A stretch of 64,000 nucleotides of DNA. Origin: Diplonema japonicum (lineage: Eukaryota > Protista > Euglenozoa: Diplonemea). The stretch covers positions 248,001 through 312,000 of the forward strand of contig OZ025722.1 in assembly GCA_964019335.1 (NCBI GenBank). Reading direction: 5' to 3'. A program made the translations under genes and the position numbers. Every line of letters starts with the position of its first letter. Within the stretch, counting starts at the first letter, position 1. Positions 8,700 through 43,266 of this stretch are shown piece after piece. Under the pieces are notes generated by a model. That model was not told where the DNA came from and did not search any database. It saw only the letters and a program-made list of their open reading frames with translations.

Positions 8700-11600
8700 A
8701 TGGTCAGAAGCCGCATGCCGCTTCTGTTATGGAGCGCGTCACTGCTTGTGGTGCTCGCGGGGGCGCAGGACACGGCACCGTCTACGACAACGACCTCTGA
8801 GCCGCTGACGGTGTTCTCTCTGGCGTCGTCTCTGTCGGAGACGGTGGACGCCTTCAGGGGGACGGTGGCGGACGCGCTGGTGGACCGGGCGGACGCCCTG
8901 ATCGACGCGCTCGGGGTGAAGAGCGCTGTGGAGGCGATGGTGGAGAGCACGGATCGACTGAACGACCTGAAGGACCAGACGGTGGAGGCCCTGGACAACA
9001 TGATGGACTTCCTGGAAGGGGACGAGGTGGACACCTACACGGACGAGCTGACGAACCTCGCGACGAACCTGAAGCCCTACATCCGAACCTTCTCTGGACA
9101 GTGCAACTCGTCGGTGGCCTCGGCAAGCAGGAAGGCCCTGCTCCTGGAGGCGTCGCAGAACCACCTGAAGAGGCGTATCGCGAAGCCGCTGGCGAGGAAC
9201 TGCGACCAGCAGGCCTTCGGGTGCCCGCTCTTCACGGTGACCCTTGGCTTCGACGTCTCTTACACGCGCTTGAAGAAGGGGAACTTCCACTTCACCCCCT
9301 CTGTGGGGCTCGGGGTGAGCGTCGGGGTGGACACGGCCCCTCTGGACAACTGGTACAACCACATCTTTGTCGGGATCGGTCTTGGTTGGGGTGTTGGTTT
9401 CAGCTATGAGTACACGGCTGCTCCTGCTGTTCCTACCCCTGTCCCCACACCTGTTCCTACCCCTGTCCCTACACCGGTTCCTACACCTGTTCCTACACCT
9501 GTCCCTACACCTGTTCCTACACCTGTTCCTACACCGGTTCCTACACCGGTTCCTACACCTGTCCCCACACCTGTTCCGACCCCTGTCCCCACCCCTGTCC
9601 CTACACCTGTTCCGACTCCGGTTCCGACCCCTGTCCCCACCCCTGTCCCCACGCCGGCCCCTACCCCGGAGCCCTCGAGCGCGTGCACGACGGACAACGA
9701 CTGTGGGCTGGACGAGGTCTGCACGATGGGGCTGTGCGTGATGGAGACGACGACGAAAGGGGGGAGGAAGGCGCTGTCCGTGGAGGAGAGGCGGGAGGCG
9801 GAGCTGCTCGCAGCGCCGACGGACAAGAAGGGTTTCTTCGCGAACACGAAGTTCGAGCTGTCTTTGTCGGTGGAGTGGTTCGCGAACGCGGGGGCGTACA
9901 GCGGCTTCGCCTTCACGATCGGGGTGGACATGCCGGAGATCGTGCAGGCGGTGACGGGGATCGAGGGGGCGACGATCGTCTTCACGCACCCGCACTGGAG
10001 GTGCTTCGAGGTGGTGTCGGCGAGCAACTGGTGGGGGAGCGTGCTTTTCGGAGGGTTCGGGCTGACCCTGAAGTCGTGGGAGCTGTTCACGAAGACGAAC
10101 GCGCAGGCGACGGGAGAGATGGACGCGGCGATCGACGGGCTGCAGGAGAAGGTGAAGAAGTCGCTTCCGGAGGTGATCGCGAGTTGGAAGAAGCAGCGGG
10201 CGGAGGCGATCACCGACGCGCTCGGGAACAAGTGGTCCGGGATCGGGTTCAGCCTCGGGATGGCGGCGACCTTGGAGGACACGAACGACAAGACGAGTTT
10301 GGGGTACCGAAAGGAGGAGTGCCCGTTCAACACCCCGGAGCCCCCTGCGGTTCCCGAGGCGAACGACACGGCTTCTATCAACAACAACAACAACAACAAG
10401 AACGGCGGCGGCTCAAGGGAACTCTTGGACTCAGCATCAGACCTCGGAGACTTCGTGGAACTGATAAGACCAGTCCTCAGAGACGGAGAGGTGACGATGC
10501 CCTTCTGCCTCGGAGCCTGCAGCAACCCGACCCCGACCACCTCGATCTCGGGGACCGGACGGATCGGGCAGGCAACGACCTGCGACGGGGTGGAGGCGAG
10601 CGTGTGGTTGGACCAAATAACGATGGCGAACGTGGCCTACCTGGTGACGAGCAACTTCGACAGGGACGTGGCGAACGCCCTGGACACGATCCTGTCGCCC
10701 GTGCTGTCCTTCGGGATCCAGGACACGAAGCTCGCCCTCGCGGCGACGACCTCCGGGGTGAAGCTGTACGCGATCGGGTCGCCGAAGCTTCCGGACGTGC
10801 TGGAGGGGGACTTCTTGGAGGTGATCGCGGACCTCACGTCGAGCTTCCGGGTGTCGGCGAGCGCGGAGCTGACGTTCTCCGGGTCGGCGGTGCTGGAGCT
10901 GCGGGTGGGGACGGACCCGGACAACTCGGAGAGCAACTTCGCCCTCGTGAACACGGCGGGGACCCTCGGGATGAGCATCTACATCCAGTTCGAGCACGTG
11001 TTCGGGGGGACGCCGACGCAGAGCCTCGGGGTGAACATCCCGCTGAAGATCTGCGTGGAGCGGTGCTCTGAGGTCTACGCGAACCGCTACTTCCTGTTCC
11101 TCATCGGGGACCTGTCGCTGGTGGTGAGCCCGACGGCGCAGCTGGTGCGCGGGACCCTCACCATGGACGGGTGGTGGTACCGCGCCTTGGGGCTCCCCTT
11201 CCTCCACATCGGGGACATCGTCCTCGGGGCGGAGTGGGACCTGAAGTCCCCGATCCCGACAGGGTTCGTTATCGGGGGCGCGGTCTGCCTCGGGAAGGAG
11301 GCGAACTGCAAGACGGACACGGCGCCCTTCATCGAGGGCCGCACCTACGTCGGGGTGAGCGCGACCCTCCCGGAGGACAACTTCTTCATCGCGATGGTGT
11401 CGGAGCTCACCATCGGCGGGGTCATCGACCTCGTGTCGGAGTACGTCCCCGCCCTGGACACGGTGTCGATCCCGGGGAAGCTCGGGGAGTCCGGGATCTA
11501 CCCCTACGACAAGGACTACAAGACGAAGTGCGCGGGGCAGCTGGACGGCTACGCGAACGAGACCACGCTGGATTTGGAGTGCTTCGCCTTCTTCTCCTTC

Positions 11601-14600
11601 AGCCCTATCAAGGAGCAGAGGCTGGCCTTCCGGAGCGGGGACGTGGTGATCCCCGCCGGGGTCGCCCTGCAGGGGCGCCTGAACTTCCTCGGCTGGGAGA
11701 TCGCGATCGACCTCGCGGTGAGCAAGACCCGCTTCTACATCAACGCCTGGATGGACCCGGTGGACCTGGACATCGGAGGGTTCAAGATGCGGATCGGGAA
11801 CCGCTTGGAGAACAAGGTGGCGGTGGGCGGGGCGAAGTTCCTGGTGGACCTGCAGGTGGCGCCGTCCCCGAGCGCCCTGATCGACATCGGGGGAGCCTTC
11901 GACATCCCGATGCTGAAGGCGTACGGCTACCTGAACGTGACCCTGAACGCGGAGATCTTCTCCTTCTCGGCGGGGATCAGCCTCTTCGGCGGGGCGCTGT
12001 CCTCGCACGTGAACGTGACCTGGAACTGGGACCTCACCTTCTTCAAGATGGAGCTGCGGGACATGAACTTCCTGGAGGTGGTGAAGATCAAGCAGGTCCT
12101 CTTCATGTACGACTTGACACAACCGATCCCGTACGCCATCTTCCAGTGCAAGATCCAGGTCCTGTTCATAAACCTCGAGGCGAAGGTGGAGGTGAACGGG
12201 AACGAGATCGACTTCGCGGTGACGGTGGACCTGGCGCTCGTGACGACGACGGTGAGCGGGCACGCGACGGTCGCCTCGAGCTTCGAGGACTCGGAGTTCG
12301 ACATCTCTGTGTCGGTGTCTCTGGGGGACCTGGGGCAGGCGATCGTGGACGGGATCAACGACGCGTGCAAGGCGGTGGCGAAGGTGGCGACGGAGGCCTG
12401 GAACTTCGTGGAGGGGAAGGTGCAGGCTTTGTGGACCGGGATCAAGGACGTCTTCAACAACGCTTTGAGCGCGATCAAGAACGCGGTCGGGGCCTTCCTG
12501 GACAGCATCGAGGACGTGATCGCGGACGTGGTGGGGGCGCTGAAGGAGGTCCCGGTGCTCGGGAAGATCGTGGAGGCCGGTGAGAAGCTCCTGGACGGGG
12601 ACTTCGAGGGGGCGGCGCAGTCCTTCGGGAGCGCGATCGGGATCTTCAGCACGGAGGGGCACAAGATCGTGGACGCGGGGGGCAAGAACGAGTACGGGTG
12701 CAAGTACGTGAAGGAGCAGTGGAGGGAGTGCTGGTGCCACGGGCTGTGCGCCTTCGGGAAGACCTGCAAGACGAAGTCCGGGTCGAAGTACGCGGAGCCG
12801 GGGTGCATGGAGGACGTGGCGCTCGCGGCGGCGGAGGTGAAGACGAAGTCCGACAAGATGGCGAAGAAGAGGGGGGTGATCGACGACTCGAAGGAGATCA
12901 ACCCGGGGTTGGAGAGCATCGACGCCGGGACGGCGGTCCCGATGCCGTCGCTGCAGCCGTCGACGGTGTCGGTGCCGTTCGGGTCGAACTCGGCGGCGGC
13001 GGCGGGGGCCTTCAACGGCGGGGTGAAGCAGTACGGCGGGAAGGGCTCTGGCGGCGGGCTGTCCGGGTCGGAGCAGGCGGTGTCCCTCAGCAACATGCCG
13101 TACGACTTCACGTCGCAGGCGAGCTACGACGCGAGCGTGGAGAACACGCAGAACAGGATGGTGACGGCGATGAAGGACAAGGCGCTGGAGAAGCAAGGGG
13201 GGATGGGGAGCGACATCAGCAGCGAGGCGGGGCTGGTGGCGCGGAACCCCCCGGTCCTCGGGGCCGCGACCTCGTACACCTTCCGCTGCGACCAACCGAT
13301 CAACCTGGACAGCCTGAAGCCGCAGCCCGTGTACATCGACCCCGCGTGCACCTCGGGGGCCGTGGTGGTGATGCTGAGGAAGACCACGCTCCCGACCTCG
13401 CAGTTCCCGAACAGGATCTGCGGCTCCTACTTCCTGGAGGTGGTGTGGCAGCTGCAGGACAACCCGGCCTGCGGGGGGACCTCGGACGAGGTGAAGCAGA
13501 TCATCACGGTGGAGCCGGCCCCGCCCGCCTTCTCCTTCTTCCCGGCGGACGCGCACATCAACACGCAGCAGACCCTGGACCCGGCGGTGCTGGGGATCGC
13601 GGAGGGGGAGTCCCCCTGCAAGCAGGAGTTCGACATCTTCTCCGTGGACAGCGACCCGAAGCCGGTGGAAAACCAGTGCGGGAAGTGGACGATCGAGAGG
13701 ACGTGGACGATCGTCCCCTACTTCTCCGACGCGGTGTGCACGGGGACCTTCGCGGACAGCAGCAGCAGGATCCAGACCATTTATATCACGGACGAGACGG
13801 CCCCTGTCTTCACCTACACCCCCGGGGCGGAAATAGAGGTTCCCTTCTTCGAGAACTTCGGGTCGGCGAACCCGATCCCGCTGACGGAGGAGCAGACGCA
13901 CGCCGACTTCGCGGGGATGAACCTGGTGTCGGAGCCGACGACGACGACCTCGGTGGACGGCCCGCTCGTGAGGCAGTCGGTGAACCTGGAGGACGAGCCG
14001 ACCTGCAGGGACCGCGGGCTCGCGCAGCAGACGAGGACCTGGACCACGACCGACAAGTGCGGGAACAGCAGGACCTTCCAGCAGACGGTGAAGGTGCAGC
14101 ACCCTCCGACCGCGCTGACGACGACGCAGCAGTGGACCCCGGCGGACCAGCTCTTCGTCCACTGGGTCGGGATAAACCAGCTCCCCGAGGTGTGCCACGC
14201 CGGGAAGGAGGTGGTCGGGGGCCCGAAGGGGTTCAAGCCGCTGGACGACTCGGCGACGGCGACGCACGACTGCGTGGACGCTCCCTGGACGGAGGACGGG
14301 TGCAGGAGGCTGGCCCCCGAGACCCCGACCTACACGGAGCAGGTCTACTCGGAGCCGCCGCGCTTCGTGAGCTTCCCCTCGGACATCACGATCAACACGA
14401 CGCACTCGCTCCACCCGGACAGCGGGCTGGGGAGCCTACTGCGGGACCCCCCTCAGCATCCCCTTCCGCGACGCGGAGCCCGTCCTCATCTCCTGCGGGG
14501 TGTGGGAGATCAAGCGAACCTGGAAGGTGCAGCCGCACTACAAGGACTGCGGGGAGGACTTCGACGCCTACCCGGACTCCCTGACGACGACGCGCGTGCA

Positions 14601-15954
14601 GACGATCACGGTGGAGGACCTGTTCGCCCCCGAGTTCATCGAGACCCCCGAGGCGGACCAGTTCGTGCACTTCCTGTCGGACTACGGCCCCTCGGTGACG
14701 GGGGTGCCCCTCGTGGAGGACATCGCGACCCACCCGGACATGGCAGCCCTGAACCTCGTCTCCTACCCGATCAAGCTGGAGTACGCGGACGTCGCCTTCG
14801 ACTTCCACAGCGACGCGCAGAGCTGCAGCGAGGGGCTCGCCGCGGTGACGAGGAGGTGGACCACCCGCGACCGCTGCGAGACCACGGCGACCTGGGAGCA
14901 GGTGGTGCGGGTGGAGCACCCGCGCGCGGAGGGCGGGATGGGGGAGATGGGGAACGCCACCCAGTTCCAGGCCTTCTCCGTCGGGGACATTTATTTGGAG
15001 AACACGACCGTCGGGGACGTCGGCTCCGTGGAGGAGGTGACCCTGAAGAGGAGCGTCGCCGACAGGGTCGTCGCGGGGATCGCGGAGCCGCTGACGGACC
15101 ACTGCGGGATGCCCGTCCAGGAGCTCGGGGACAGCGCAGCCGACAACATCACCGACTTCTCGGAGGCGCTCCTGAACCTCCCGCCCCTCCGCACGGGGGC
15201 CATGAAGATCACCTGCCCCGACCAGAACCAGTCCCTCTGCAAGGTCGACATGCTGACCCCCAACTCCACAACGAAGGTCACCATCGACGACGACAACAAC
15301 ATGCTGCTCGAGGGCGACGGCGACCTGTACAACATCTTCTCGGTGAAGGGGAACGAGTGGCTCATTCCTACTCCGGAACTTTTGCACAAGACCTGGTGGG
15401 GCTGGGACCACTGGCACCACAAGTGGAAAAAGGATTTGTGGGCAACAGACCCGAAGCCGACCATGACTGTGAGGGCATCTGGATGGGTCATCATGAACAT
15501 TAAGTACGGACACCTGGACCACAAGCTGGACACCCTGAGAGACACCATTTTCGAGGGGAAGTCCCTCGGGGCCCCCTTCACCATCTACAACATGAAGCAG
15601 ATCTGCGAGAGCCACAGCGACTGGCACAGGGAGAGGGAGTGCAGGTACATCCACCACTGGTGGGGCTGGCACCATTGGCACCACCATGGTCACCACCACG
15701 GGCACAGCCACCACGGGAACCACGGGCACCACACCTGGCACTGGCACTCCCACTGGAAGGGCTTCCACGACACCAACATGCTGCTGAAGAACGTGACCCT
15801 GCACGGGACCCTCGTCACCCAAGATGAGAGGGTGAGGCTCGAGATCGAGAAGTCGAGGGTCTATGGGCAGGTCATCTCCGCTGGGAGAAAATTGTACGTA
15901 GAGGACACACAGTTCCACTGCAACCTCTTCCCTGCCAACACCCCGTGCCCGTAG
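8700..15954 (+). pseudogene. Giant secreted protein, copy 1, frameshifted (pseudogene, truncated variant or assembly error)
   Basis: Lacks AGGCCGAGCGGGGC (14 bp) at 14432/14433 relative to copies 2-4. The correct C-terminal frame continues in ORF 14500-15954. Confidence 0.8.
9432..9647 (+). repeat. 12-bp minisatellite encoding (PTPV)18, copy 1
   Basis: CCNACNCCNGTY units. Confidence 0.95.
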
Positions 15955-17086
15955 TAGCGATGGCTGTCAAGAGGGGAAGGGCTTACTTCGACACTAGTTT
16001 GTATGCGCGGATTTATAGCCGTTGAGGCTAGTCATTTTGTGGAGTTGTTTGCCTTTACTTTTTCATTCTTTTTTTTTCTCTTTTTATCTATACTATTTTA
16101 TTTTATTTTTTTTAGCCACTCCGGAATTTCACAGACTTTTCTGCTCTGATGTTTCAAATGTGGGTTCTTGAAGAAGTTTTATTCTCATCACTTTACTATT
16201 GTTGAGCGAGACAGGGGGTTGTATTGAGTACTCGCAAATCCGTCCCCCCCCCCCCCCCCCCCCCTTGTAGAACTTAGGGACAGTAAAGAAAAAAGAAAAG
16301 AAAAAGAGAGAAGAGGAAGGGGGGGGGGGGGGGGGAAAGGGCTTAATAATGGCTTTGGCTCCAAAAGAAAAAAAAAAGAAGCACGTTCTCCTCTTGTTCT
16401 TTTTTTTTTTTTTTTAATATTTTTCTATTTTTTTCTGTTGTTCCAGTATTATCTCCCCCCTTTTCCGGCCTCTCATCTTTTTGGTTTCCGATGACCTTGA
16501 TCTCACCTTCTTGTGTTTTCATTTCCCAGTAAAATTGTGTAAGATGGCTATCATCATGGACTTGTGATGTGGAGCGGAGGTTATCGTCAATTGTAAAGAA
16601 CACATCAACACAGGTAGAAGCCCGGGTGTGGAAATGAAAAAGGGAGTTGAGAAGGAAGCAAAGGAGAGAGTCTGGCTTGTCTAGACCTGGAAGGAGGGGA
16701 GCAAAGAAGAGAGAGAGGGGAAAAGAAATATTTTTTTAGCCAATATTTTTTTTTTATAGACTAACGTTTTCTTTCATTTTTTTTTTCTTTCGCTTCAAAT
16801 CCGTTAAGTGACCCGGCCTTTGTTCCATAGTGGTTTCTCGCAGGGGCCACATAGATTTTTCCAGAAAATCCATAGGGGCCACATTGGGCCCTGTCTCGAG
16901 AAAGCAATTGGAAATTTTGTTTGTTCGTCATTTCGTCGATTTCTGTTGTGACGCTTAACGGATCCGGGGTGTTTGAAAAATATTTTCCTACAAAAACAAA
17001 ATGTTGTAAAAAAAAAAAGTAGAACGGGAAAAAAAAAAAAAAAAAAAAGAGAAAAAAGGATTTTTTTTAAAGGGGTAAAAAAGAAG

Positions 17087-18338: not shown

Positions 18339-18427
18339 GACAAACAAACAAAAAAAAAAAGAAAAAGACTAAAAAGGGGAAGCACCCCATCTCCCTTTTA
18401 AAAAAAAAAAAAAAAAAAAAAAAAGCA

Positions 18428-21400
18428 ATGGTCAGAAGCCGCATGCCGCTTCTGTTATGGAGCGCGTCACTGCTTGTGGTGCTCGCGGGGGCGCAGGACA
18501 CGGCACCGTCTACGACAACGACCTCTGAGCCGCTGACGGTGTTCTCTCTGGCGTCGTCTCTGTCGGAGACGGTGGACGCCTTCAGGGGGACGGTGGCGGA
18601 CGCGCTGGTGGACCGGGCGGACGCCCTGATCGACGCGCTCGGGGTGAAGAGCGCTGTGGAGGCGATGGTGGAGAGCACGGATCGACTGAACGACCTGAAG
18701 GACCAGACGGTGGAGGCCCTGGACAACATGATGGACTTCCTGGAAGGGGACGAGGTGGACACCTACACGGACGAGCTGACGAACCTCGCGACGAACCTGA
18801 AGCCCTACATCCGAACCTTCTCTGGACAGTGCAACTCGTCGGTGGCCTCGGCAAGCAGGAAGGCCCTGCTCCTGGAGGCGTCGCAGAACCACCTGAAGAG
18901 GCGTATCGCGAAGCCGCTGGCGAGGAACTGCGACCAGCAGGCCTTCGGGTGCCCGCTCTTCACGGTGACCCTTGGCTTCGACGTCTCTTACACGCGCTTG
19001 AAGAAGGGGAACTTCCACTTCACCCCCTCTGTGGGGCTCGGGGTGAGCGTCGGGGTGGACACGGCCCCTCTGGACAACTGGTACAACCACATCTTTGTCG
19101 GGATCGGTCTTGGTTGGGGTGTTGGTTTCAGCTATGAGTACACGGCTGCTCCTGCTGTTCCTACCCCTGTCCCCACACCTGTTCCTACCCCTGTCCCTAC
19201 ACCGGTTCCTACACCTGTTCCTACACCTGTCCCTACACCTGTTCCTACACCTGTTCCTACACCGGTTCCTACACCGGTTCCTACACCTGTCCCCACACCT
19301 GTTCCGACCCCTGTCCCCACCCCTGTCCCTACACCTGTTCCGACTCCGGTTCCGACCCCTGTCCCCACCCCTGTCCCCACGCCGGCCCCTACCCCGGAGC
19401 CCTCGAGCGCGTGCACGACGGACAACGACTGTGGGCTGGACGAGGTCTGCACGATGGGGCTGTGCGTGATGGAGACGACGACGAAAGGGGGGAGGAAGGC
19501 GCTGTCCGTGGAGGAGAGGCGGGAGGCGGAGCTGCTCGCAGCGCCGACGGACAAGAAGGGTTTCTTCGCGAACACGAAGTTCGAGCTGTCTTTGTCGGTG
19601 GAGTGGTTCGCGAACGCGGGGGCGTACAGCGGCTTCGCCTTCACGATCGGGGTGGACATGCCGGAGATCGTGCAGGCGGTGACGGGGATCGAGGGGGCGA
19701 CGATCGTCTTCACGCACCCGCACTGGAGGTGCTTCGAGGTGGTGTCGGCGAGCAACTGGTGGGGGAGCGTGCTTTTCGGAGGGTTCGGGCTGACCCTGAA
19801 GTCGTGGGAGCTGTTCACGAAGACGAACGCGCAGGCGACGGGAGAGATGGACGCGGCGATCGACGGGCTGCAGGAGAAGGTGAAGAAGTCGCTTCCGGAG
19901 GTGATCGCGAGTTGGAAGAAGCAGCGGGCGGAGGCGATCACCGACGCGCTCGGGAACAAGTGGTCCGGGATCGGGTTCAGCCTCGGGATGGCGGCGACCT
20001 TGGAGGACACGAACGACAAGACGAGTTTGGGGTACCGAAAGGAGGAGTGCCCGTTCAACACCCCGGAGCCCCCTGCGGTTCCCGAGGCGAACGACACGGC
20101 TTCTATCAACAACAACAACAACAACAAGAACGGCGGCGGCTCAAGGGAACTCTTGGACTCAGCATCAGACCTCGGAGACTTCGTGGAACTGATAAGACCA
20201 GTCCTCAGAGACGGAGAGGTGACGATGCCCTTCTGCCTCGGAGCCTGCAGCAACCCGACCCCGACCACCTCGATCTCGGGGACCGGACGGATCGGGCAGG
20301 CAACGACCTGCGACGGGGTGGAGGCGAGCGTGTGGTTGGACCAAATAACGATGGCGAACGTGGCCTACCTGGTGACGAGCAACTTCGACAGGGACGTGGC
20401 GAACGCCCTGGACACGATCCTGTCGCCCGTGCTGTCCTTCGGGATCCAGGACACGAAGCTCGCCCTCGCGGCGACGACCTCCGGGGTGAAGCTGTACGCG
20501 ATCGGGTCGCCGAAGCTTCCGGACGTGCTGGAGGGGGACTTCTTGGAGGTGATCGCGGACCTCACGTCGAGCTTCCGGGTGTCGGCGAGCGCGGAGCTGA
20601 CGTTCTCCGGGTCGGCGGTGCTGGAGCTGCGGGTGGGGACGGACCCGGACAACTCGGAGAGCAACTTCGCCCTCGTGAACACGGCGGGGACCCTCGGGAT
20701 GAGCATCTACATCCAGTTCGAGCACGTGTTCGGGGGGACGCCGACGCAGAGCCTCGGGGTGAACATCCCGCTGAAGATCTGCGTGGAGCGGTGCTCTGAG
20801 GTCTACGCGAACCGCTACTTCCTGTTCCTCATCGGGGACCTGTCGCTGGTGGTGAGCCCGACGGCGCAGCTGGTGCGCGGGACCCTCACCATGGACGGGT
20901 GGTGGTACCGCGCCTTGGGGCTCCCCTTCCTCCACATCGGGGACATCGTCCTCGGGGCGGAGTGGGACCTGAAGTCCCCGATCCCGACAGGGTTCGTTAT
21001 CGGGGGCGCGGTCTGCCTCGGGAAGGAGGCGAACTGCAAGACGGACACGGCGCCCTTCATCGAGGGCCGCACCTACGTCGGGGTGAGCGCGACCCTCCCG
21101 GAGGACAACTTCTTCATCGCGATGGTGTCGGAGCTCACCATCGGCGGGGTCATCGACCTCGTGTCGGAGTACGTCCCCGCCCTGGACACGGTGTCGATCC
21201 CGGGGAAGCTCGGGGAGTCCGGGATCTACCCCTACGACAAGGACTACAAGACGAAGTGCGCGGGGCAGCTGGACGGCTACGCGAACGAGACCACGCTGGA
21301 TTTGGAGTGCTTCGCCTTCTTCTCCTTCAGCCCTATCAAGGAGCAGAGGCTGGCCTTCCGGAGCGGGGACGTGGTGATCCCCGCCGGGGTCGCCCTGCAG

Positions 21401-24400
21401 GGGCGCCTGAACTTCCTCGGCTGGGAGATCGCGATCGACCTCGCGGTGAGCAAGACCCGCTTCTACATCAACGCCTGGATGGACCCGGTGGACCTGGACA
21501 TCGGAGGGTTCAAGATGCGGATCGGGAACCGCTTGGAGAACAAGGTGGCGGTGGGCGGGGCGAAGTTCCTGGTGGACCTGCAGGTGGCGCCGTCCCCGAG
21601 CGCCCTGATCGACATCGGGGGAGCCTTCGACATCCCGATGCTGAAGGCGTACGGCTACCTGAACGTGACCCTGAACGCGGAGATCTTCTCCTTCTCGGCG
21701 GGGATCAGCCTCTTCGGCGGGGCGCTGTCCTCGCACGTGAACGTGACCTGGAACTGGGACCTCACCTTCTTCAAGATGGAGCTGCGGGACATGAACTTCC
21801 TGGAGGTGGTGAAGATCAAGCAGGTCCTCTTCATGTACGACTTGACACAACCGATCCCGTACGCCATCTTCCAGTGCAAGATCCAGGTCCTGTTCATAAA
21901 CCTCGAGGCGAAGGTGGAGGTGAACGGGAACGAGATCGACTTCGCGGTGACGGTGGACCTGGCGCTCGTGACGACGACGGTGAGCGGGCACGCGACGGTC
22001 GCCTCGAGCTTCGAGGACTCGGAGTTCGACATCTCTGTGTCGGTGTCTCTGGGGGACCTGGGGCAGGCGATCGTGGACGGGATCAACGACGCGTGCAAGG
22101 CGGTGGCGAAGGTGGCGACGGAGGCCTGGAACTTCGTGGAGGGGAAGGTGCAGGCTTTGTGGACCGGGATCAAGGACGTCTTCAACAACGCTTTGAGCGC
22201 GATCAAGAACGCGGTCGGGGCCTTCCTGGACAGCATCGAGGACGTGATCGCGGACGTGGTGGGGGCGCTGAAGGAGGTCCCGGTGCTCGGGAAGATCGTG
22301 GAGGCCGGTGAGAAGCTCCTGGACGGGGACTTCGAGGGGGCGGCGCAGTCCTTCGGGAGCGCGATCGGGATCTTCAGCACGGAGGGGCACAAGATCGTGG
22401 ACGCGGGGGGCAAGAACGAGTACGGGTGCAAGTACGTGAAGGAGCAGTGGAGGGAGTGCTGGTGCCACGGGCTGTGCGCCTTCGGGAAGACCTGCAAGAC
22501 GAAGTCCGGGTCGAAGTACGCGGAGCCGGGGTGCATGGAGGACGTGGCGCTCGCGGCGGCGGAGGTGAAGACGAAGTCCGACAAGATGGCGAAGAAGAGG
22601 GGGGTGATCGACGACTCGAAGGAGATCAACCCGGGGTTGGAGAGCATCGACGCCGGGACGGCGGTCCCGATGCCGTCGCTGCAGCCGTCGACGGTGTCGG
22701 TGCCGTTCGGGTCGAACTCGGCGGCGGCGGCGGGGGCCTTCAACGGCGGGGTGAAGCAGTACGGCGGGAAGGGCTCTGGCGGCGGGCTGTCCGGGTCGGA
22801 GCAGGCGGTGTCCCTCAGCAACATGCCGTACGACTTCACGTCGCAGGCGAGCTACGACGCGAGCGTGGAGAACACGCAGAACAGGATGGTGACGGCGATG
22901 AAGGACAAGGCGCTGGAGAAGCAAGGGGGGATGGGGAGCGACATCAGCAGCGAGGCGGGGCTGGTGGCGCGGAACCCCCCGGTCCTCGGGGCCGCGACCT
23001 CGTACACCTTCCGCTGCGACCAACCGATCAACCTGGACAGCCTGAAGCCGCAGCCCGTGTACATCGACCCCGCGTGCACCTCGGGGGCCGTGGTGGTGAT
23101 GCTGAGGAAGACCACGCTCCCGACCTCGCAGTTCCCGAACAGGATCTGCGGCTCCTACTTCCTGGAGGTGGTGTGGCAGCTGCAGGACAACCCGGCCTGC
23201 GGGGGGACCTCGGACGAGGTGAAGCAGATCATCACGGTGGAGCCGGCCCCGCCCGCCTTCTCCTTCTTCCCGGCGGACGCGCACATCAACACGCAGCAGA
23301 CCCTGGACCCGGCGGTGCTGGGGATCGCGGAGGGGGAGTCCCCCTGCAAGCAGGAGTTCGACATCTTCTCCGTGGACAGCGACCCGAAGCCGGTGGAAAA
23401 CCAGTGCGGGAAGTGGACGATCGAGAGGACGTGGACGATCGTCCCCTACTTCTCCGACGCGGTGTGCACGGGGACCTTCGCGGACAGCAGCAGCAGGATC
23501 CAGACCATTTATATCACGGACGAGACGGCCCCTGTCTTCACCTACACCCCCGGGGCGGAAATAGAGGTTCCCTTCTTCGAGAACTTCGGGTCGGCGAACC
23601 CGATCCCGCTGACGGAGGAGCAGACGCACGCCGACTTCGCGGGGATGAACCTGGTGTCGGAGCCGACGACGACGACCTCGGTGGACGGCCCGCTCGTGAG
23701 GCAGTCGGTGAACCTGGAGGACGAGCCGACCTGCAGGGACCGCGGGCTCGCGCAGCAGACGAGGACCTGGACCACGACCGACAAGTGCGGGAACAGCAGG
23801 ACCTTCCAGCAGACGGTGAAGGTGCAGCACCCTCCGACCGCGCTGACGACGACGCAGCAGTGGACCCCGGCGGACCAGCTCTTCGTCCACTGGGTCGGGA
23901 TAAACCAGCTCCCCGAGGTGTGCCACGCCGGGAAGGAGGTGGTCGGGGGCCCGAAGGGGTTCAAGCCGCTGGACGACTCGGCGACGGCGACGCACGACTG
24001 CGTGGACGCTCCCTGGACGGAGGACGGGTGCAGGAGGCTGGCCCCCGAGACCCCGACCTACACGGAGCAGGTCTACTCGGAGCCGCCGCGCTTCGTGAGC
24101 TTCCCCTCGGACATCACGATCAACACGACGCACTCGCTCCACCCGGACAGCGGGCTGGGGAGGCCGAGCGGGGCAGCCTACTGCGGGACCCCCCTCAGCA
24201 TCCCCTTCCGCGACGCGGAGCCCGTCCTCATCTCCTGCGGGGTGTGGGAGATCAAGCGAACCTGGAAGGTGCAGCCGCACTACAAGGACTGCGGGGAGGA
24301 CTTCGACGCCTACCCGGACTCCCTGACGACGACGCGCGTGCAGACGATCACGGTGGAGGACCTGTTCGCCCCCGAGTTCATCGAGACCCCCGAGGCGGAC

Positions 24401-25702
24401 CAGTTCGTGCACTTCCTGTCGGACTACGGCCCCTCGGTGACGGGGGTGCCCCTCGTGGAGGACATCGCGACCCACCCGGACATGGCAGCCCTGAACCTCG
24501 TCTCCTACCCGATCAAGCTGGAGTACGCGGACGTCGCCTTCGACTTCCACAGCGACGCGCAGAGCTGCAGCGAGGGGCTCGCCGCGGTGACGAGGAGGTG
24601 GACCACCCGCGACCGCTGCGAGACCACGGCGACCTGGGAGCAGGTGGTGCGGGTGGAGCACCCGCGCGCGGAGGGCGGGATGGGGGAGATGGGGAACGCC
24701 ACCCAGTTCCAGGCCTTCTCCGTCGGGGACATTTATTTGGAGAACACGACCGTCGGGGACGTCGGCTCCGTGGAGGAGGTGACCCTGAAGAGGAGCGTCG
24801 CCGACAGGGTCGTCGCGGGGATCGCGGAGCCGCTGACGGACCACTGCGGGATGCCCGTCCAGGAGCTCGGGGACAGCGCAGCCGACAACATCACCGACTT
24901 CTCGGAGGCGCTCCTGAACCTCCCGCCCCTCCGCACGGGGGCCATGAAGATCACCTGCCCCGACCAGAACCAGTCCCTCTGCAAGGTCGACATGCTGACC
25001 CCCAACTCCACAACGAAGGTCACCATCGACGACGACAACAACATGCTGCTCGAGGGCGACGGCGACCTGTACAACATCTTCTCGGTGAAGGGGAACGAGT
25101 GGCTCATTCCCACCCCGCACCCTGTGCACCACACCTGGTGGGGCTGGGACCACTGGCACACCCACAAGTGGCACAAGGATGTGTGGAGGACCGACCCGAA
25201 GCCGACCATGACTGTGAGGGCATCTGGATGGGTCATCATGAACATCGAGTACGGACACCTGGACCACAGGCTGGACACCCTGAGAGACACCATTTTCGAG
25301 GGGAGGTCCCTCGGGGCCCCCTTCACCATCTACAACATGAAGCAGATCTGCGAGAGCCACAGCGACTGGCACAGGGAGAGGGAGTGCAGGTACATCCACC
25401 ACTGGTGGGGCTGGCACCACTGGCACCACCATGGTCACCACCACGGGCACAACCACCACGGGAACCACGGGCACCACACCTGGCACTGGCACTCCCACTG
25501 GAAGGGCTTCCACGACACCAACATGCTGCTGAAGAACGTGACCCTGCACGGGACCCTCGTCACCCAAGACGAGAGGGTGAGGCTCGAGATCGAGAAGTCG
25601 AGGGTCTATGGGCAGGTCATCTCCGCTGGGAGAAAATTGTACGTAGAGGACACACAGTTCCACTGCAACCTCTTCCCTGCCAACACCCCGTGCCCGCAGT
25701 AG
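18428..25702 (+). CDS. Giant secreted multidomain protein, copy 2 (2424 aa; HYR-like repeats, choice-of-anchor-A-like C-terminus, His/Trp-rich inserts)
   Basis: Intact intronless ORF with strong GC3 bias. Signal peptide [22 protein letters not shown]|QD; [12 protein letters not shown]-type repeats. Confidence 0.92.
19160..19375 (+). repeat. 12-bp minisatellite encoding (PTPV)18, copy 2
   Basis: Same unit order as copy 1. Confidence 0.95.
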
Positions 25703-27151: not shown

Positions 27152-27183
<32 letters not shown>

Positions 27184-27185
27184 CA
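25703..27185 (+). repeat. 1483-bp intergenic spacer, apparently identical to 34473-35955
   Basis: Same length and sequence by eye, including homopolymer runs; the ORF track gives identical spurious ORFs at a +8770 offset. Confidence 0.9.
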
Positions 27186-35955: not shown

Positions 35956-38900
35956 ATGGTCAGAAGCCGCATGCCGCTTCTGTTATGGAGCGCGTCACTG
36001 CTTGTGGTGCTCGCGGGGGCGCAGGACACGGCACCGTCTACGACAACGACCTCTGAGCCGCTGACGGTGTTCTCTCTGGCGTCGTCTCTGTCGGAGACGG
36101 TGGACGCCTTCAGGGGGACGGTGGCGGACGCGCTGGTGGACCGGGCGGACGCCCTGATCGACGCGCTCGGGGTGAAGAGCGCTGTGGAGGCGATGGTGGA
36201 GAGCACGGATCGACTGAACGACCTGAAGGACCAGACGGTGGAGGCCCTGGACAACATGATGGACTTCCTGGAAGGGGACGAGGTGGACACCTACACGGAC
36301 GAGCTGACGAACCTCGCGACGAACCTGAAGCCCTACATCCGAACCTTCTCTGGACAGTGCAACTCGTCGGTGGCCTCGGCAAGCAGGAAGGCCCTGCTCC
36401 TGGAGGCGTCGCAGAACCACCTGAAGAGGCGTATCGCGAAGCCGCTGGCGAGGAACTGCGACCAGCAGGCCTTCGGGTGCCCGCTCTTCACGGTGACCCT
36501 TGGCTTCGACGTCTCTTACACGCGCTTGAAGAAGGGGAACTTCCACTTCACCCCCTCTGTGGGGCTCGGGGTGAGCGTCGGGGTGGACACGGCCCCTCTG
36601 GACAACTGGTACAACCACATCTTTGTCGGGATCGGTCTTGGTTGGGGTGTTGGTTTCAGCTATGAGTACACGGCTGCTCCTGCTGTTCCTACCCCTGTCC
36701 CCACACCTGTTCCTACCCCTGTCCCTACACCGGTTCCTACACCTGTTCCTACACCTGTCCCTACACCTGTTCCTACACCTGTTCCTACACCTGTTCCTAC
36801 ACCTGTTCCTACACCTGTTCCTACACCGGTTCCTACACCGGTTCCTACACCTGTCCCCACACCTGTTCCGACCCCTGTCCCCACCCCTGTCCCTACACCT
36901 GTTCCGACTCCGGTTCCGACCCCTGTCCCCACCCCTGTCCCCACGCCGGCCCCTACCCCGGAGCCCTCGAGCGCGTGCACGACGGACAACGACTGTGGGC
37001 TGGACGAGGTCTGCACGATGGGGCTGTGCGTGATGGAGACGACGACGAAAGGGGGGAGGAAGGCGCTGTCCGTGGAGGAGAGGCGGGAGGCGGAGCTGCT
37101 CGCAGCGCCGACGGACAAGAAGGGTTTCTTCGCGAACACGAAGTTCGAGCTGTCTTTGTCGGTGGAGTGGTTCGCGAACGCGGGGGCGTACAGCGGCTTC
37201 GCCTTCACGATCGGGGTGGACATGCCGGAGATCGTGCAGGCGGTGACGGGGATCGAGGGGGCGACGATCGTCTTCACGCACCCGCACTGGAGGTGCTTCG
37301 AGGTGGTGTCGGCGAGCAACTGGTGGGGGAGCGTGCTTTTCGGAGGGTTCGGGCTGACCCTGAAGTCGTGGGAGCTGTTCACGAAGACGAACGCGCAGGC
37401 GACGGGAGAGATGGACGCGGCGATCGACGGGCTGCAGGAGAAGGTGAAGAAGTCGCTTCCGGAGGTGATCGCGAGTTGGAAGAAGCAGCGGGCGGAGGCG
37501 ATCACCGACGCGCTCGGGAACAAGTGGTCCGGGATCGGGTTCAGCCTCGGGATGGCGGCGACCTTGGAGGACACGAACGACAAGACGAGTTTGGGGTACC
37601 GAAAGGAGGAGTGCCCGTTCAACACCCCGGAGCCCCCTGCGGTTCCCGAGGCGAACGACACGGCTTCTATCAACAACAACAACAACAACAAGAACGGCGG
37701 CGGCTCAAGGGAACTCTTGGACTCAGCATCAGACCTCGGAGACTTCGTGGAACTGATAAGACCAGTCCTCAGAGACGGAGAGGTGACGATGCCCTTCTGC
37801 CTCGGAGCCTGCAGCAACCCGACCCCGACCACCTCGATCTCGGGGACCGGACGGATCGGGCAGGCAACGACCTGCGACGGGGTGGAGGCGAGCGTGTGGT
37901 TGGACCAAATAACGATGGCGAACGTGGCCTACCTGGTGACGAGCAACTTCGACAGGGACGTGGCGAACGCCCTGGACACGATCCTGTCGCCCGTGCTGTC
38001 CTTCGGGATCCAGGACACGAAGCTCGCCCTCGCGGCGACGACCTCCGGGGTGAAGCTGTACGCGATCGGGTCGCCGAAGCTTCCGGACGTGCTGGAGGGG
38101 GACTTCTTGGAGGTGATCGCGGACCTCACGTCGAGCTTCCGGGTGTCGGCGAGCGCGGAGCTGACGTTCTCCGGGTCGGCGGTGCTGGAGCTGCGGGTGG
38201 GGACGGACCCGGACAACTCGGAGAGCAACTTCGCCCTCGTGAACACGGCGGGGACCCTCGGGATGAGCATCTACATCCAGTTCGAGCACGTGTTCGGGGG
38301 GACGCCGACGCAGAGCCTCGGGGTGAACATCCCGCTGAAGATCTGCGTGGAGCGGTGCTCTGAGGTCTACGCGAACCGCTACTTCCTGTTCCTCATCGGG
38401 GACCTGTCGCTGGTGGTGAGCCCGACGGCGCAGCTGGTGCGCGGGACCCTCACCATGGACGGGTGGTGGTACCGCGCCTTGGGGCTCCCCTTCCTCCACA
38501 TCGGGGACATCGTCCTCGGGGCGGAGTGGGACCTGAAGTCCCCGATCCCGACAGGGTTCGTTATCGGGGGCGCGGTCTGCCTCGGGAAGGAGGCGAACTG
38601 CAAGACGGACACGGCGCCCTTCATCGAGGGCCGCACCTACGTCGGGGTGAGCGCGACCCTCCCGGAGGACAACTTCTTCATCGCGATGGTGTCGGAGCTC
38701 ACCATCGGCGGGGTCATCGACCTCGTGTCGGAGTACGTCCCCGCCCTGGACACGGTGTCGATCCCGGGGAAGCTCGGGGAGTCCGGGATCTACCCCTACG
38801 ACAAGGACTACAAGACGAAGTGCGCGGGGCAGCTGGACGGCTACGCGAACGAGACCACGCTGGATTTGGAGTGCTTCGCCTTCTTCTCCTTCAGCCCTAT

Positions 38901-41900
38901 CAAGGAGCAGAGGCTGGCCTTCCGGAGCGGGGACGTGGTGATCCCCGCCGGGGTCGCCCTGCAGGGGCGCCTGAACTTCCTCGGCTGGGAGATCGCGATC
39001 GACCTCGCGGTGAGCAAGACCCGCTTCTACATCAACGCCTGGATGGACCCGGTGGACCTGGACATCGGAGGGTTCAAGATGCGGATCGGGAACCGCTTGG
39101 AGAACAAGGTGGCGGTGGGCGGGGCGAAGTTCCTGGTGGACCTGCAGGTGGCGCCGTCCCCGAGCGCCCTGATCGACATCGGGGGAGCCTTCGACATCCC
39201 GATGCTGAAGGCGTACGGCTACCTGAACGTGACCCTGAACGCGGAGATCTTCTCCTTCTCGGCGGGGATCAGCCTCTTCGGCGGGGCGCTGTCCTCGCAC
39301 GTGAACGTGACCTGGAACTGGGACCTCACCTTCTTCAAGATGGAGCTGCGGGACATGAACTTCCTGGAGGTGGTGAAGATCAAGCAGGTCCTCTTCATGT
39401 ACGACTTGACACAACCGATCCCGTACGCCATCTTCCAGTGCAAGATCCAGGTCCTGTTCATAAACCTCGAGGCGAAGGTGGAGGTGAACGGGAACGAGAT
39501 CGACTTCGCGGTGACGGTGGACCTGGCGCTCGTGACGACGACGGTGAGCGGGCACGCGACGGTCGCCTCGAGCTTCGAGGACTCGGAGTTCGACATCTCT
39601 GTGTCGGTGTCTCTGGGGGACCTGGGGCAGGCGATCGTGGACGGGATCAACGACGCGTGCAAGGCGGTGGCGAAGGTGGCGACGGAGGCCTGGAACTTCG
39701 TGGAGGGGAAGGTGCAGGCTTTGTGGACCGGGATCAAGGACGTCTTCAACAACGCTTTGAGCGCGATCAAGAACGCGGTCGGGGCCTTCCTGGACAGCAT
39801 CGAGGACGTGATCGCGGACGTGGTGGGGGCGCTGAAGGAGGTCCCGGTGCTCGGGAAGATCGTGGAGGCCGGTGAGAAGCTCCTGGACGGGGACTTCGAG
39901 GGGGCGGCGCAGTCCTTCGGGAGCGCGATCGGGATCTTCAGCACGGAGGGGCACAAGATCGTGGACGCGGGGGGCAAGAACGAGTACGGGTGCAAGTACG
40001 TGAAGGAGCAGTGGAGGGAGTGCTGGTGCCACGGGCTGTGCGCCTTCGGGAAGACCTGCAAGACGAAGTCCGGGTCGAAGTACGCGGAGCCGGGGTGCAT
40101 GGAGGACGTGGCGCTCGCGGCGGCGGAGGTGAAGACGAAGTCCGACAAGATGGCGAAGAAGAGGGGGGTGATCGACGACTCGAAGGAGATCAACCCGGGG
40201 TTGGAGAGCATCGACGCCGGGACGGCGGTCCCGATGCCGTCGCTGCAGCCGTCGACGGTGTCGGTGCCGTTCGGGTCGAACTCGGCGGCGGCGGCGGGGG
40301 CCTTCAACGGCGGGGTGAAGCAGTACGGCGGGAAGGGCTCTGGCGGCGGGCTGTCCGGGTCGGAGCAGGCGGTGTCCCTCAGCAACATGCCGTACGACTT
40401 CACGTCGCAGGCGAGCTACGACGCGAGCGTGGAGAACACGCAGAACAGGATGGTGACGGCGATGAAGGACAAGGCGCTGGAGAAGCAAGGGGGGATGGGG
40501 AGCGACATCAGCAGCGAGGCGGGGCTGGTGGCGCGGAACCCCCCGGTCCTCGGGGCCGCGACCTCGTACACCTTCCGCTGCGACCAACCGATCAACCTGG
40601 ACAGCCTGAAGCCGCAGCCCGTGTACATCGACCCCGCGTGCACCTCGGGGGCCGTGGTGGTGATGCTGAGGAAGACCACGCTCCCGACCTCGCAGTTCCC
40701 GAACAGGATCTGCGGCTCCTACTTCCTGGAGGTGGTGTGGCAGCTGCAGGACAACCCGGCCTGCGGGGGGACCTCGGACGAGGTGAAGCAGATCATCACG
40801 GTGGAGCCGGCCCCGCCCGCCTTCTCCTTCTTCCCGGCGGACGCGCACATCAACACGCAGCAGACCCTGGACCCGGCGGTGCTGGGGATCGCGGAGGGGG
40901 AGTCCCCCTGCAAGCAGGAGTTCGACATCTTCTCCGTGGACAGCGACCCGAAGCCGGTGGAAAACCAGTGCGGGAAGTGGACGATCGAGAGGACGTGGAC
41001 GATCGTCCCCTACTTCTCCGACGCGGTGTGCACGGGGACCTTCGCGGACAGCAGCAGCAGGATCCAGACCATTTATATCACGGACGAGACGGCCCCTGTC
41101 TTCACCTACACCCCCGGGGCGGAAATAGAGGTTCCCTTCTTCGAGAACTTCGGGTCGGCGAACCCGATCCCGCTGACGGAGGAGCAGACGCACGCCGACT
41201 TCGCGGGGATGAACCTGGTGTCGGAGCCGACGACGACGACCTCGGTGGACGGCCCGCTCGTGAGGCAGTCGGTGAACCTGGAGGACGAGCCGACCTGCAG
41301 GGACCGCGGGCTCGCGCAGCAGACGAGGACCTGGACCACGACCGACAAGTGCGGGAACAGCAGGACCTTCCAGCAGACGGTGAAGGTGCAGCACCCTCCG
41401 ACCGCGCTGACGACGACGCAGCAGTGGACCCCGGCGGACCAGCTCTTCGTCCACTGGGTCGGGATAAACCAGCTCCCCGAGGTGTGCCACGCCGGGAAGG
41501 AGGTGGTCGGGGGCCCGAAGGGGTTCAAGCCGCTGGACGACTCGGCGACGGCGACGCACGACTGCGTGGACGCTCCCTGGACGGAGGACGGGTGCAGGAG
41601 GCTGGCCCCCGAGACCCCGACCTACACGGAGCAGGTCTACTCGGAGCCGCCGCGCTTCGTGAGCTTCCCCTCGGACATCACGATCAACACGACGCACTCG
41701 CTCCACCCGGACAGCGGGCTGGGGAGGCCGAGCGGGGCAGCCTACTGCGGGACCCCCCTCAGCATCCCCTTCCGCGACGCGGAGCCCGTCCTCATCTCCT
41801 GCGGGGTGTGGGAGATCAAGCGAACCTGGAAGGTGCAGCCGCACTACAAGGACTGCGGGGAGGACTTCGACGCCTACCCGGACTCCCTGACGACGACGCG

Positions 41901-43266
41901 CGTGCAGACGATCACGGTGGAGGACCTGTTCGCCCCCGAGTTCATCGAGACCCCCGAGGCGGACCAGTTCGTGCACTTCCTGTCGGACTACGGCCCCTCG
42001 GTGACGGGGGTGCCCCTCGTGGAGGACATCGCGACCCACCCGGACATGGCAGCCCTGAACCTCGTCTCCTACCCGATCAAGCTGGAGTACGCGGACGTCG
42101 CCTTCGACTTCCACAGCGACGCGCAGAGCTGCAGCGAGGGGCTCGCCGCGGTGACGAGGAGGTGGACCACCCGCGACCGCTGCGAGACCACGGCGACCTG
42201 GGAGCAGGTGGTGCGGGTGGAGCACCCGCGCGCGGAGGGCGGGATGGGGGAGATGGGGAACGCCACCCAGTTCCAGGCCTTCTCCGTCGGGGACATTTAT
42301 TTGGAGAACACGACCGTCGGGGACGTCGGCTCCGTGGAGGAGGTGACCCTGAAGAGGAGCGTCGCCGACAGGGTCGTCGCGGGGATCGCGGAGCCGCTGA
42401 CGGACCACTGCGGGATGCCCGTCCAGGAGCTCGGGGACAGCGCAGCCGACAACATCACCGACTTCTCGGAGGCGCTCCTGAACCTCCCGCCCCTCCGCAC
42501 GGGGGCCATGAAGATCACCTGCCCCGACCAGAACCAGTCCCTCTGCAAGGTCGACATGCTGACCCCCAACTCCACAACGAAGGTCACCATCGACGACGAC
42601 AACAACATGCTGCTCGAGGGCGACGGCGACCTGTACAACATCTTCTCGGTGAAGGGGAACGAGTGGCTCATTCCCACCCCGCACCCTGTGCACCACACCT
42701 GGTGGGGCTGGGACCACTGGCACACCCACAAGTGGCACAAGGATGTGTGGAGGACCGACCCGAAGCCGACCATGACTGTGAGGGCATCTGGATGGGTCAT
42801 CATGAACATCGAGTACGGACACCTGGACCACAGGCTGGACACCCTGAGAGACACCATTTTCGAGGGGAGGTCCCTCGGGGCCCCCTTCACCATCTACAAC
42901 ATGAAGCAGATCTGCGAGAGCCACAGCGACTGGCACAGGGAGAGGGAGTGCAGGTACATCCACCACTGGTGGGGCTGGCACCACTGGCACCACCATGGTC
43001 ACCACCACGGGCACAACCACCACGGGAACCACGGGCACCACACCTGGCACTGGCACTCCCACTGGAAGGGCTTCCACGACACCAACATGCTGCTGAAGAA
43101 CGTGACCCTGCACGGGACCCTCGTCACCCAAGACGAGAGGGTGAGGCTCGAGATCGAGAAGTCGAGGGTCTATGGGCAGGTCATCTCCGCTGGGAGAAAA
43201 TTGTACGTAGAGGACACACAGTTCCACTGCAACCTCTTCCCTACCAACACCCCGTGCCCGCAGTAG
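35956..43266 (+). CDS. Giant secreted multidomain protein, copy 4 (2436 aa)
   Basis: As copy 2 with three extra PTPV units and an A>T change near the C-terminus (FPTNTPCPQ). Confidence 0.92.
36688..36939 (+). repeat. 12-bp minisatellite encoding (PTPV)21, copy 4
   Basis: Three extra CCTACACCTGTT units. Confidence 0.93.

Follow-up and report, generated by a model that had tools for sequence, protein, structure and literature searches.

Our analysis concerns a 64,000-nucleotide (nt) stretch of the genome of the euglenozoan Diplonema japonicum, hereafter the window (GenBank assembly GCA_964019335.1, contig OZ025722.1, forward strand positions 248,001 to 312,000), and within it an intron-less gene at 18428..25702 on the + strand. 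Its uninterrupted open reading frame (ORF) comprises 2,424 codons (2,424 amino acids, aa) with zero internal stops, and it is a real gene for a secreted diplonemid protein. According to the models, this protein consists of a conserved base, a stalk of immunoglobulin (Ig)-like domains and a terminal head. All large ORFs of the window that have homologues lie on the + strand, as is expected for a polycistronic euglenozoan genome, and the GC content is ~65% in coding regions against ~40% in the spacers. The opposite strand also contains long ORFs, up to 1,832 aa; the + frame is taken as the coding one because of its homologues, the purifying selection acting on it and the confident fold predictions. 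The gene is the second of four tandem copies:

8700..15957, + strand: copy 1, frameshifted at aa 1912 by a 14-nt deletion following 14432, and with 23 substitutions, mostly in the head
18428..25702, + strand: copy 2, the gene studied here, 2,424 aa
27186..34472, + strand: copy 3, 2,428 aa, one VPTP unit extra
35956..43266, + strand: copy 4, 2,436 aa, three VPTP units extra and one substitution

Copies 2, 3 and 4 differ solely in this unit number and in the one substitution. The true start codons are at 18428, 27186 and 35956, respectively. The mechanically called ORFs of copies 3 and 4 open 120 codons further upstream (26826-27185 and 35596-35955), with an ATG inside a pyrimidine-rich low-complexity spacer; these extensions have no homology to anything and are almost certainly non-coding. 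The 14 nt absent from copy 1 correspond to AGGCCGAGCGGGGC in copy 2 (24161-24174), and its 23 substitutions fall mainly around the part that encodes the first of two His/Trp loops described below. Copy 1 has the appearance of a recently formed pseudogene or of a gene partly converted by another paralogue. In the spacers, long homopolymer runs stand just upstream of the genes, of ~20-23 C (18240-18262, 26745-26767) and of ~26 A (18400-18425), and each start codon is immediately preceded by an A-run.

Along copy 2, the following features are distinguished:

18428..18493, + strand: start codon and signal-peptide-like N-terminus, aa 1-22 (from the translation)
18494..19147, + strand: Thr-rich tract, acidic helical region, three Cys and Gly-rich amphipathic strands, aa 23-240 (from the sequence)
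19148..19402, + strand: (PTPV)n linker of ~21 units, a tandem repeat whose length differs among copies
19412..19465, + strand: 4-Cys knot, aa 329-346 (from the sequence)
19466..20149, + strand: fast-evolving strand/helix region, aa 347-574 (BLAST coverage; ratio of nonsynonymous to synonymous substitution rates, dN/dS, ~0.6)
20150..22057, + strand: conserved core of ~35 predicted antiparallel amphipathic strands, barrel-like, aa 575-1210 (AlphaFold2, VIA-align, amphipathicity, relatives)
22058..22657, + strand: long amphipathic helices, a 6-Cys hairpin cluster and another helix, aa 1211-1410 (DSSP of model m13b7d3a69f3b)
22658..22969, + strand: Gly/Ser/Ala-rich low-complexity spacer, aa 1411-1514 (from the sequence; aa 1411-1425, the lowest-confidence end of the core model, have a predicted local distance difference test score, pLDDT, of 32-34)
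22970..23830, + strand: Ig-like (HYR-type) sandwiches 1-3, aa 1515-1801 (AlphaFold2 model m902f8cd8fe5b, pLDDT 70-85 for domains 1-2)
23831..24079, + strand: Cys-containing insert between Ig-like domains 3 and 4, aa 1802-1884 (pLDDT <50; conserved in orthologues)
24080..24664, + strand: Ig-like sandwiches 4-5, aa 1885-2079 (model, Foldseek)
24683..25693, + strand: C-terminal head, a predicted beta-solenoid with the fold of type-1 ice-binding proteins (IBP-1/DUF3494), aa 2086-2422 (VIA-align)
25118..25186, + strand: His/Trp-rich loop 1, aa 2231-2253 (from the sequence; disordered in the model)
25397..25513, + strand: His/Trp-rich loop 2, aa 2324-2362 (sequence and model)

The array in the window represents only a small part of the family. 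A genome-wide match with 2.5 kb of core DNA yields 26 full copies with at least 81% nucleotide identity on 15 contigs, besides one partial and one distant copy; the copy number in D. japonicum is to be read as a lower bound, i.e. at least 26 core copies. A preliminary description of this DNA, made from the window, had the gene amplified four times. That holds for the window, copy 1 being frameshifted, and understates the genome; its proposal of a high gene dosage is borne out. What it missed is the family as such, which extends over the genome, comprises at least 26 genes and has exchangeable heads, as well as the ~1,700-aa conserved unit that carries these heads. Two groups of paralogues are recognized. 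Group A (n=12; four copies on contig C75, three each on C86 and C64, two on C39) possesses five Ig-like domains and the solenoid. Group B has at least 12 members (one each on C11, C61, C98, C111, C5, C43 and C108, three on C20, two on C33) with one Ig-like domain and one or two GH18 domains; it is collinear with group A up to ~residue 1708, and the GH18 domains follow after that point. Roughly half of the D. japonicum paralogues carry a GH18 chitinase-like head in place of the stalk tip and solenoid. The C-terminal part of the family is exchangeable on a constant N-terminal base of ~1,700 aa, and this base, centred on an amphipathic barrel-like beta-meander, is the conserved unit. A further distant paralogue (L017, G000:C40:516273-520619) encodes 1,449 aa with ~26% identity to the core, without the long stalk or the head; it is transcribed, being represented by a EukProt transcript of D. 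japonicum. P0043, a protein from the EukProt transcriptome of this species, maps to the genome of the window with 99% identity along its entire length.

The GH18 domains of sister paralogues are recognized by Pfam with expectation values (E) of 5e-20 and 6e-24. Within the DxxDxDxE signature, the catalytic Glu is replaced by Leu, Gly or Pro in most domains, giving the motif DG(I/V)(D/N)(I/L/M)DY(L/G/P) in the forms DGIDIDYL, DGINIDYL, DGIDMDYL, DGVNMDYL, DGINLDYG and DGINIDYP. Single GH18 domains on C33 (both copies), C43 and C111 retain the Glu, with Asp changed to Asn. The C111 paralogue (L015:886-1125, - strand) has two GH18 domains, a Pro-Thr (PT) linker and a small Cys-rich C-terminal module; a fungal-type cellulose-binding (CBM_1) identity of this tail is possible, the match being sub-threshold (E 0.19). 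As to chromosomal position, five of ~17 loci (C5, C11, C61, C108 and C111), all of them single GH18-type genes, lie within ~15 kb of a contig end, where ~1 such locus is expected by chance (~6% of the genome is that near an end); the tandem arrays are internal.

The AlphaFold2 model of the core, based on 55 sequences, has a mean pLDDT of 75.8, with 85-93 across most strands. It predicts ~35 antiparallel strands of ~10 residues connected by tight turns (aa ~597-1208), followed by long helices of low pLDDT, three further strands and a helix; the six Cys of the cluster are located at aa 1334-1369. The strands are dyad amphipathic with strict alternation, the mean Kyte-Doolittle hydropathy (KD) being +2.1 for the hydrophobic and -1.0 for the polar face. 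On the hydrophobic face of the 38 core strands we find V, L, I, F, G and A, with only two Tyr and four Trp among ~186 residues; the aromatic girdle of membrane barrels was not found in any of these 38 strands.

Structural comparison of the core model with VIA-align returns membrane beta-barrels in the independent search as well as in the re-ranking, and all 50 best neighbours are of this type. Sam50 scores highest (Z 11.7), TamA and BamA reach Z 10-11, and porins, Tom40 and VDAC are also among the neighbours. OprB and chitoporin are aligned over ~225 residues with a root-mean-square deviation (rmsd) of 5.2-5.5 Å. Against whole 16-strand barrels, ~75% of the barrel is aligned with an rmsd of 5.2-5.7 Å and Z ~10. 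Foldseek reports weak matches only (SprA translocon, SlpA, LptD, ApoB100 and teneurin). For a teneurin/Rhs shell, the SprA translocon and LptD, the probability is 0.04-0.69 and the template-modelling score ~0.1, and no TamB-like taco chain occurs among the listed core fold matches. For ApoB100, the Foldseek probability is 0.72-0.87 and VIA-align gives Z 9.7 over 362 residues of the middle region or belt, with a poor rmsd of 18 Å. By sequence, the core matches no barrel family in Pfam or NCBIfam and no Vitellogenin_N or large lipid transfer protein N-terminal module in Pfam; a PDB profile search led to helical, compositional matches only. In the ESM Atlas the core has bacterial 'hypothetical' neighbours only, all below 0.9 and non-informative, and its relative P0031 has none. 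The core constitutes a new conserved domain, the predicted barrel-like fold of which is unusual.

The C-terminal third was modelled from 10 sequences, and the well-modelled domains reach pLDDT values of 70-85. Five tandem Ig-like sandwiches are predicted, which Foldseek relates to cadherin, protocadherin, titin and contactin arrays (E 3e-10 to 1e-6). The corresponding Pfam family HYR_4C (PF23237) remains below its 27-bit cut-off on this gene, with 22.2 bits for repeat 3, 14.6 for repeat 5 and nothing for repeats 1, 2 and 4; whole proteins score 22.0-24.2 bits, and the threshold is exceeded in the orthologues P0001 (38.3 bits) and P0005 (33 bits). At the end of this stalk, the head is modelled as a right-handed beta-solenoid with an alpha-helix alongside (model residues 647-659; domain pLDDT ~75-83 outside the loops). 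Its best structural matches are four ice-binding proteins (IBPs), namely 5uyt_B (Z 14.9, rmsd 3.2 Å, 182 residues aligned), 7bwx (Z 14.1), 3wp9 (Z 13.0) and 6bg8 (Z 12.8). Together they show rmsd values of 3.1-3.7 Å over 175-191 residues, and the next unrelated fold scores Z 8.8. The model thus proposes a DUF3494 / type-1 IBP fold for the head, the match being at the level of the fold only. The head has no match in NCBIfam (hence none to choice-of-anchor-A), a PDB profile search with it found no IBP, and a word-indexed homologue search revealed no stand-alone relative of 184-586 aa.

Insertions in the solenoid account for the two His/Trp loops, which always occupy the same loop positions. Both are present in group A paralogues, and loop 2 also in two relatives from ENA; the C64 paralogue has an acidic loop in place of loop 1, and the D. 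papillatum orthologues have no His/Trp loops. For a temperate marine protist such as D. japonicum, the ligand of the head is unlikely to be ice.

The N-terminal 574 aa are less widely conserved. The signal-peptide-like N-terminus, read directly from the sequence, is the same in all paralogues and represents the sole strongly hydrophobic helix-like stretch of the protein. The region of aa 23-240 is common only to the closest orthologues P0001 and P0002 (33% identity) and evolves faster than the core (dN/dS 0.33-0.55). In the linker, the tandem repeat has a 12-nt period and 18.3 copies (19155-19374). For the 4-Cys knot, Pfam offers DUF7107 with a score of 21 bits (E 4e-4), short of the cut-off of 24.6, and a Pfam search with aa 347-574 remained without a match; from ~aa 385 onward, according to BLAST coverage along the query, the sequence is common to more relatives. 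In total, the protein contains 50 Cys. Neither a transmembrane (TM) helix-like segment after the signal peptide nor a hydrophobic C-terminal tail of the glycosylphosphatidylinositol (GPI) type is seen in its sequence.

Nearly all features named in the preliminary description (signal peptide, (PTPV)n, 4-Cys knot, strands, helices, Cys cluster, and a solenoid with His/Trp inserts) were recovered in the sequence or the models. The five HYR-like repeats it listed correspond to the five modelled sandwiches, with sub-threshold HYR_4C scores on repeats 3 and 5 only, and its statement that TM and GPI signals are lacking agrees with what we see after the signal peptide and at the C-terminus. The architecture was said not to belong to a described family, and nothing in Pfam, NCBIfam or the PDB changes this: sequence searches with the whole protein and its segments gave nothing above threshold, and its named relatives are called 'hypothetical protein'. 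All PDB sequence matches were rejected as artefacts of the PT linker or of helical composition.

An exhaustive HMMER search with aa 350-1500 reveals ~204 homologues at E up to 1e-3 and 41 at E up to 1e-30, counted as representatives at 50%-identity clustering; a word-indexed search with the core finds just three relatives. The module shared by the family spans aa ~580-1420, or ~385-1680 in closer relatives, and ~100 of the 150 listed relatives cover the core. No Pfam family was found in the core of any member tested. Every traceable relative is from a diplonemid, a long genome contig or a metagenome (Tara, other ENA, JGI). The named members, none of them characterised, are the D. papillatum genes DIPPA_17775, DIPPA_34312, DIPPA_26457 and DIPPA_26451, all annotated as 'hypothetical protein', and transcripts of Rhynchopus euleeides; KAJ9445237 from D. 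papillatum is mislabelled 'Fibropellin-1'. P0001, DIPPA_17775 and DIPPA_34312 possess the whole plan through to the C-terminal solenoid, with more Ig-like repeats. Among relatives in other diplonemids and metagenomes, one has four tyrosinase domains and others have EGF, PAN or Sushi modules, all of which are extracellular binding or modifying modules.

Within group A, dN/dS amounts to 0.12-0.42 outside the N-terminal ~575 aa and to 0.33-0.65 within them; by these ratios the gene is under purifying selection. The synonymous divergence (dS) between arrays (18428-25702 versus L005, L008 and L009) is ~0.24 in the core against ~0.6 in the first 575 codons. The lower value of the core suggests gene conversion of this part or, alternatively, a mosaic origin of the N-terminal part. 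Members of the family are transcribed, as documented by Trinity transcripts from R. euleeides and D. japonicum. Stretches of the gene are present in 20 public runs from 12 studies, and contigs of a marine metatranscriptome (an RNA library) match it with 0-1 mismatches over ~200 nt. In the best public run, whose library kind is not recorded, contig depth is 776-1,300, and locally up to 8,500 (18435-23899), against ~18 in unique spacer (17900-18212). This contrast reflects either very abundant RNA or more copies than have been assembled.

Around the array, the + strand neighbours (46178-48451, 55133-56503 and 2310-3833) include a protein with an fn3 and a purple-acid-phosphatase N-terminal domain, a metallophosphoesterase and an EGF-module protein. 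Several genes with extracellular-type domains thus appear to be gathered in this chromosomal region.

The protein looks extracellular, as had been proposed, in view of its signal peptide, its 50 Cys, its PT-rich linker and the EGF, PAN and Sushi modules of relatives. We consider it about an even call that the product of the gene is an abundant binding protein of the extracellular space, similar to an adhesin or lectin and built of base, stalk and head, that serves attachment or feeding. According to this model, the signal peptide would direct secretion, after which the base would keep the molecule attached to a surface or incorporated in an assembly; spacers would be provided by the PT-rich linker together with the Ig-like domains, and the ligand bound by the solenoid head would be a solid or a polymer present on particles, on cell walls or on prey. 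The variable His/Trp loops could tune specificity, possibly via metal ions or the stacking of sugars. A high dosage would result from the tandem arrays with their near-identical copies, and the swapping of heads would diversify the targets. The chi-lectin heads of sister genes and the tyrosinase heads of relatives may point to polysaccharide-rich or cuticle-like targets. Diplonemids reportedly attack algal and plant cell walls and carry digestive enzymes on their surface, some of them without a recognisable anchor (PMC10161547, PMC12697944). Surfaces other than ice are the presumed targets of many DUF3494 proteins from non-icy habitats (PMC11645318). The stalk and adhesive tip of the preliminary description fit the predicted Ig-like array (Foldseek E 3e-10) and the modelled DUF3494-fold solenoid (Z 14.9). 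Its membrane- or lipid-interacting N-terminal half fared less uniformly: amphipathic strands and a model resembling a barrel are indeed found, but the hydrophobic face is devoid of the aromatics typical of membrane barrels.

Several points weigh against a binding protein of this kind. The head lacks a sequence link to DUF3494, with no match to PF11999 at E up to 10; the model in which it was recognized derives from only 10 sequences and has a mean pLDDT of 61.6; and a fold match gives no function. A recognisable membrane anchor, be it a TM helix or GPI, is not present in the sequence. The identifiers of the D. papillatum orthologues do not occur in the accessible parts of the supplements and full text of PMC12697944 and PMC10161547. 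The core has an aliphatic hydrophobic face with ~3% Tyr/Trp, a composition that agrees with a buried core at least as well as with a surface facing lipid, and the high copy number would equally suit a structural matrix protein.

The mode of action of the base is a separate question. Anchoring or self-assembly is in our estimate about as probable as all other modes taken together; membrane attack or pore formation is unlikely, a role as lipid carrier very unlikely, and a plain soluble scaffold takes up what remains. We know of no barrel-insertion machinery in eukaryotic plasma membranes. It is rather improbable, in our judgement, that the core represents a new class of porin-sized barrels (16 to ~35 strands) of the eukaryotic secretory pathway, which would embed in or attack a bilayer without insertion machinery of the bacterial or organelle type. 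If this were true, diplonemids would own a modular display or attack system of barrel anchor and exchangeable heads, an independently evolved analogue of inverse autotransporters.

Other explanations start from the same observations. That the ORF is non-functional, either an open frame arising from GC-rich repeat DNA or a member of a dead repeat family, might be suspected from the opposite-strand ORFs of up to 1,832 aa and from the frameshift in copy 1. This explanation is refuted by the ~204 homologues, some of them from transcriptomes of other diplonemids, by dN/dS values well below 1 and by the confidently predicted folds of core and head; in addition, the three intact copies are identical apart from the differences given above. 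A prey- or membrane-attack protein, the head of which targets a surface while the amphipathic beta module, together with the amphipathic helices, inserts as a pore or extracts lipid and so kills or opens the prey, would make sense of 50 membrane beta-barrels among the 50 best structural neighbours of the core, of the strict strand alternation (KD +2.1 versus -1.0), and of targeting heads on a constant module, an arrangement reminiscent of toxins whose binding part is separate; predation by diplonemids has been reported (PMC10161547). However, known secreted pore formers do not use a preformed monomeric barrel of 16-35 strands, the aromatic girdle is absent, the rmsd is 5-9 Å with zero sequence relation to any barrel family, and the model does not fix which way the hydrophobic face points. 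Stalks of Ig-like domains and tandem arrays giving a high dosage are encountered more typically in adhesins or matrix proteins. We regard such an attack function as distinctly doubtful.

Even less probable appears a lipoprotein-like carrier or coat whose sheets enclose or bind neutral lipid or pieces of membrane, like the beta-belt of ApoB100 or the sheets of vitellogenin, and whose heads direct the particle. The long amphipathic strands in combination with amphipathic helices, and the matches to ApoB100 in Foldseek (0.72-0.87) and VIA-align (Z 9.7 over 362 residues), are compatible with it, but the ApoB alignment is poor at 18 Å, no Vitellogenin_N or other lipid-transfer family is matched, and the rest of the architecture gives no pointer to lipid transport. 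A structural part of a secreted matrix, cell coat, cyst wall or ejectable organelle, with the base self-assembling as a soluble block and the heads cross-linking polysaccharide, overlaps strongly with the binding protein that we favour. The very high gene dosage with its near-identical tandem arrays, the coiled-coil-like helices after the core and an aliphatic hydrophobic face compatible with a packed core would all suit it, and lectin-like heads could cross-link glycans. Yet the heads vary widely and change fast, a behaviour more in keeping with external targets than with a fixed matrix, and we consider this explanation unlikely.

With at least 26 genes of ~7.3 kb, the family accounts for ~0.3% of the D. 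japonicum genome; it occurs across cultured diplonemids and marine metagenomes and is wholly unannotated. How these cells recognise different surfaces could be explained by the exchange of heads (IBP-fold solenoid, chi-lectin, tyrosinase, EGF/PAN/Sushi) on an unchanging base. Furthermore, the predicted fold of the head would extend the DUF3494 ice-binding fold to a temperate eukaryote, with ice an improbable ligand. Genetic tools exist for P. papillatum, a species with orthologues; hence, these ideas are directly testable.

Among known systems, the closest analogues are bacterial adhesins with a DUF3494 or another solenoid placed after a series of Ig-like domains. The bacterial ice-binding adhesins SfIBP_1 of Shewanella frigidimarina (PDB 6bg8) and MpIBP of Marinomonas primoryensis resemble the D. 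japonicum protein in being secreted or surface proteins with a run of Ig-like sandwiches and a beta-solenoid head at the end. The logic of base, extender and ligand-binding tip is likewise shared with these adhesins, of which MpIBP has 1.5 MDa (PMC5550230), and the DUF3494 domain of SfIBP_1 is among the top structural matches to our modelled head (Z 12.8). In contrast to these adhesins, the diplonemid protein is eukaryotic, takes the signal-peptide route, has no DUF3494 sequence match and no recognised RTX or type-1-secretion parts, and carries an unrelated base of ~1,700 aa and two His/Trp loops in the head. Inverse autotransporters (intimin/invasin, type Ve secretion) have the same order of parts, i.e. 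an N-terminal barrel-like module, Ig-like repeats and a C-terminal tip; there is no sequence relation, and the predicted sheet comprises ~35 strands here but 12 there. The barrels of Omp85, porin, Tom40 and VDAC are the best neighbours of aa ~590-1020 of the core (Z 10-11.7, ~230 residues) and share strands of ~10 residues with dyad amphipathicity. They differ by an rmsd of 5-9 Å, 5-12% identity and the lack of any family hidden Markov model match; moreover, the D. japonicum core has nearly no Tyr or Trp on its hydrophobic face, and the protein bears a secretory signal and disulfide-rich extracellular modules. The likeness to chi-lectins (inactive GH18) is limited to sister paralogues with catalytic Glu changed to Leu, Gly or Pro; unlike chi-lectins, some sister copies keep the Glu, and the GH18 domains sit on a 1,700-aa carrier. 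True homologues are the hypothetical proteins of D. papillatum and the transcripts of Rhynchopus euleeides, with 30-46% identity. Those of D. papillatum are longer (3,784-4,046 aa), with more Ig-like repeats, extra N-terminal sequence and no His/Trp loops. DIPPA_17775 and DIPPA_34312 agree with the gene studied here in possessing core, Ig-like repeats and solenoid head.

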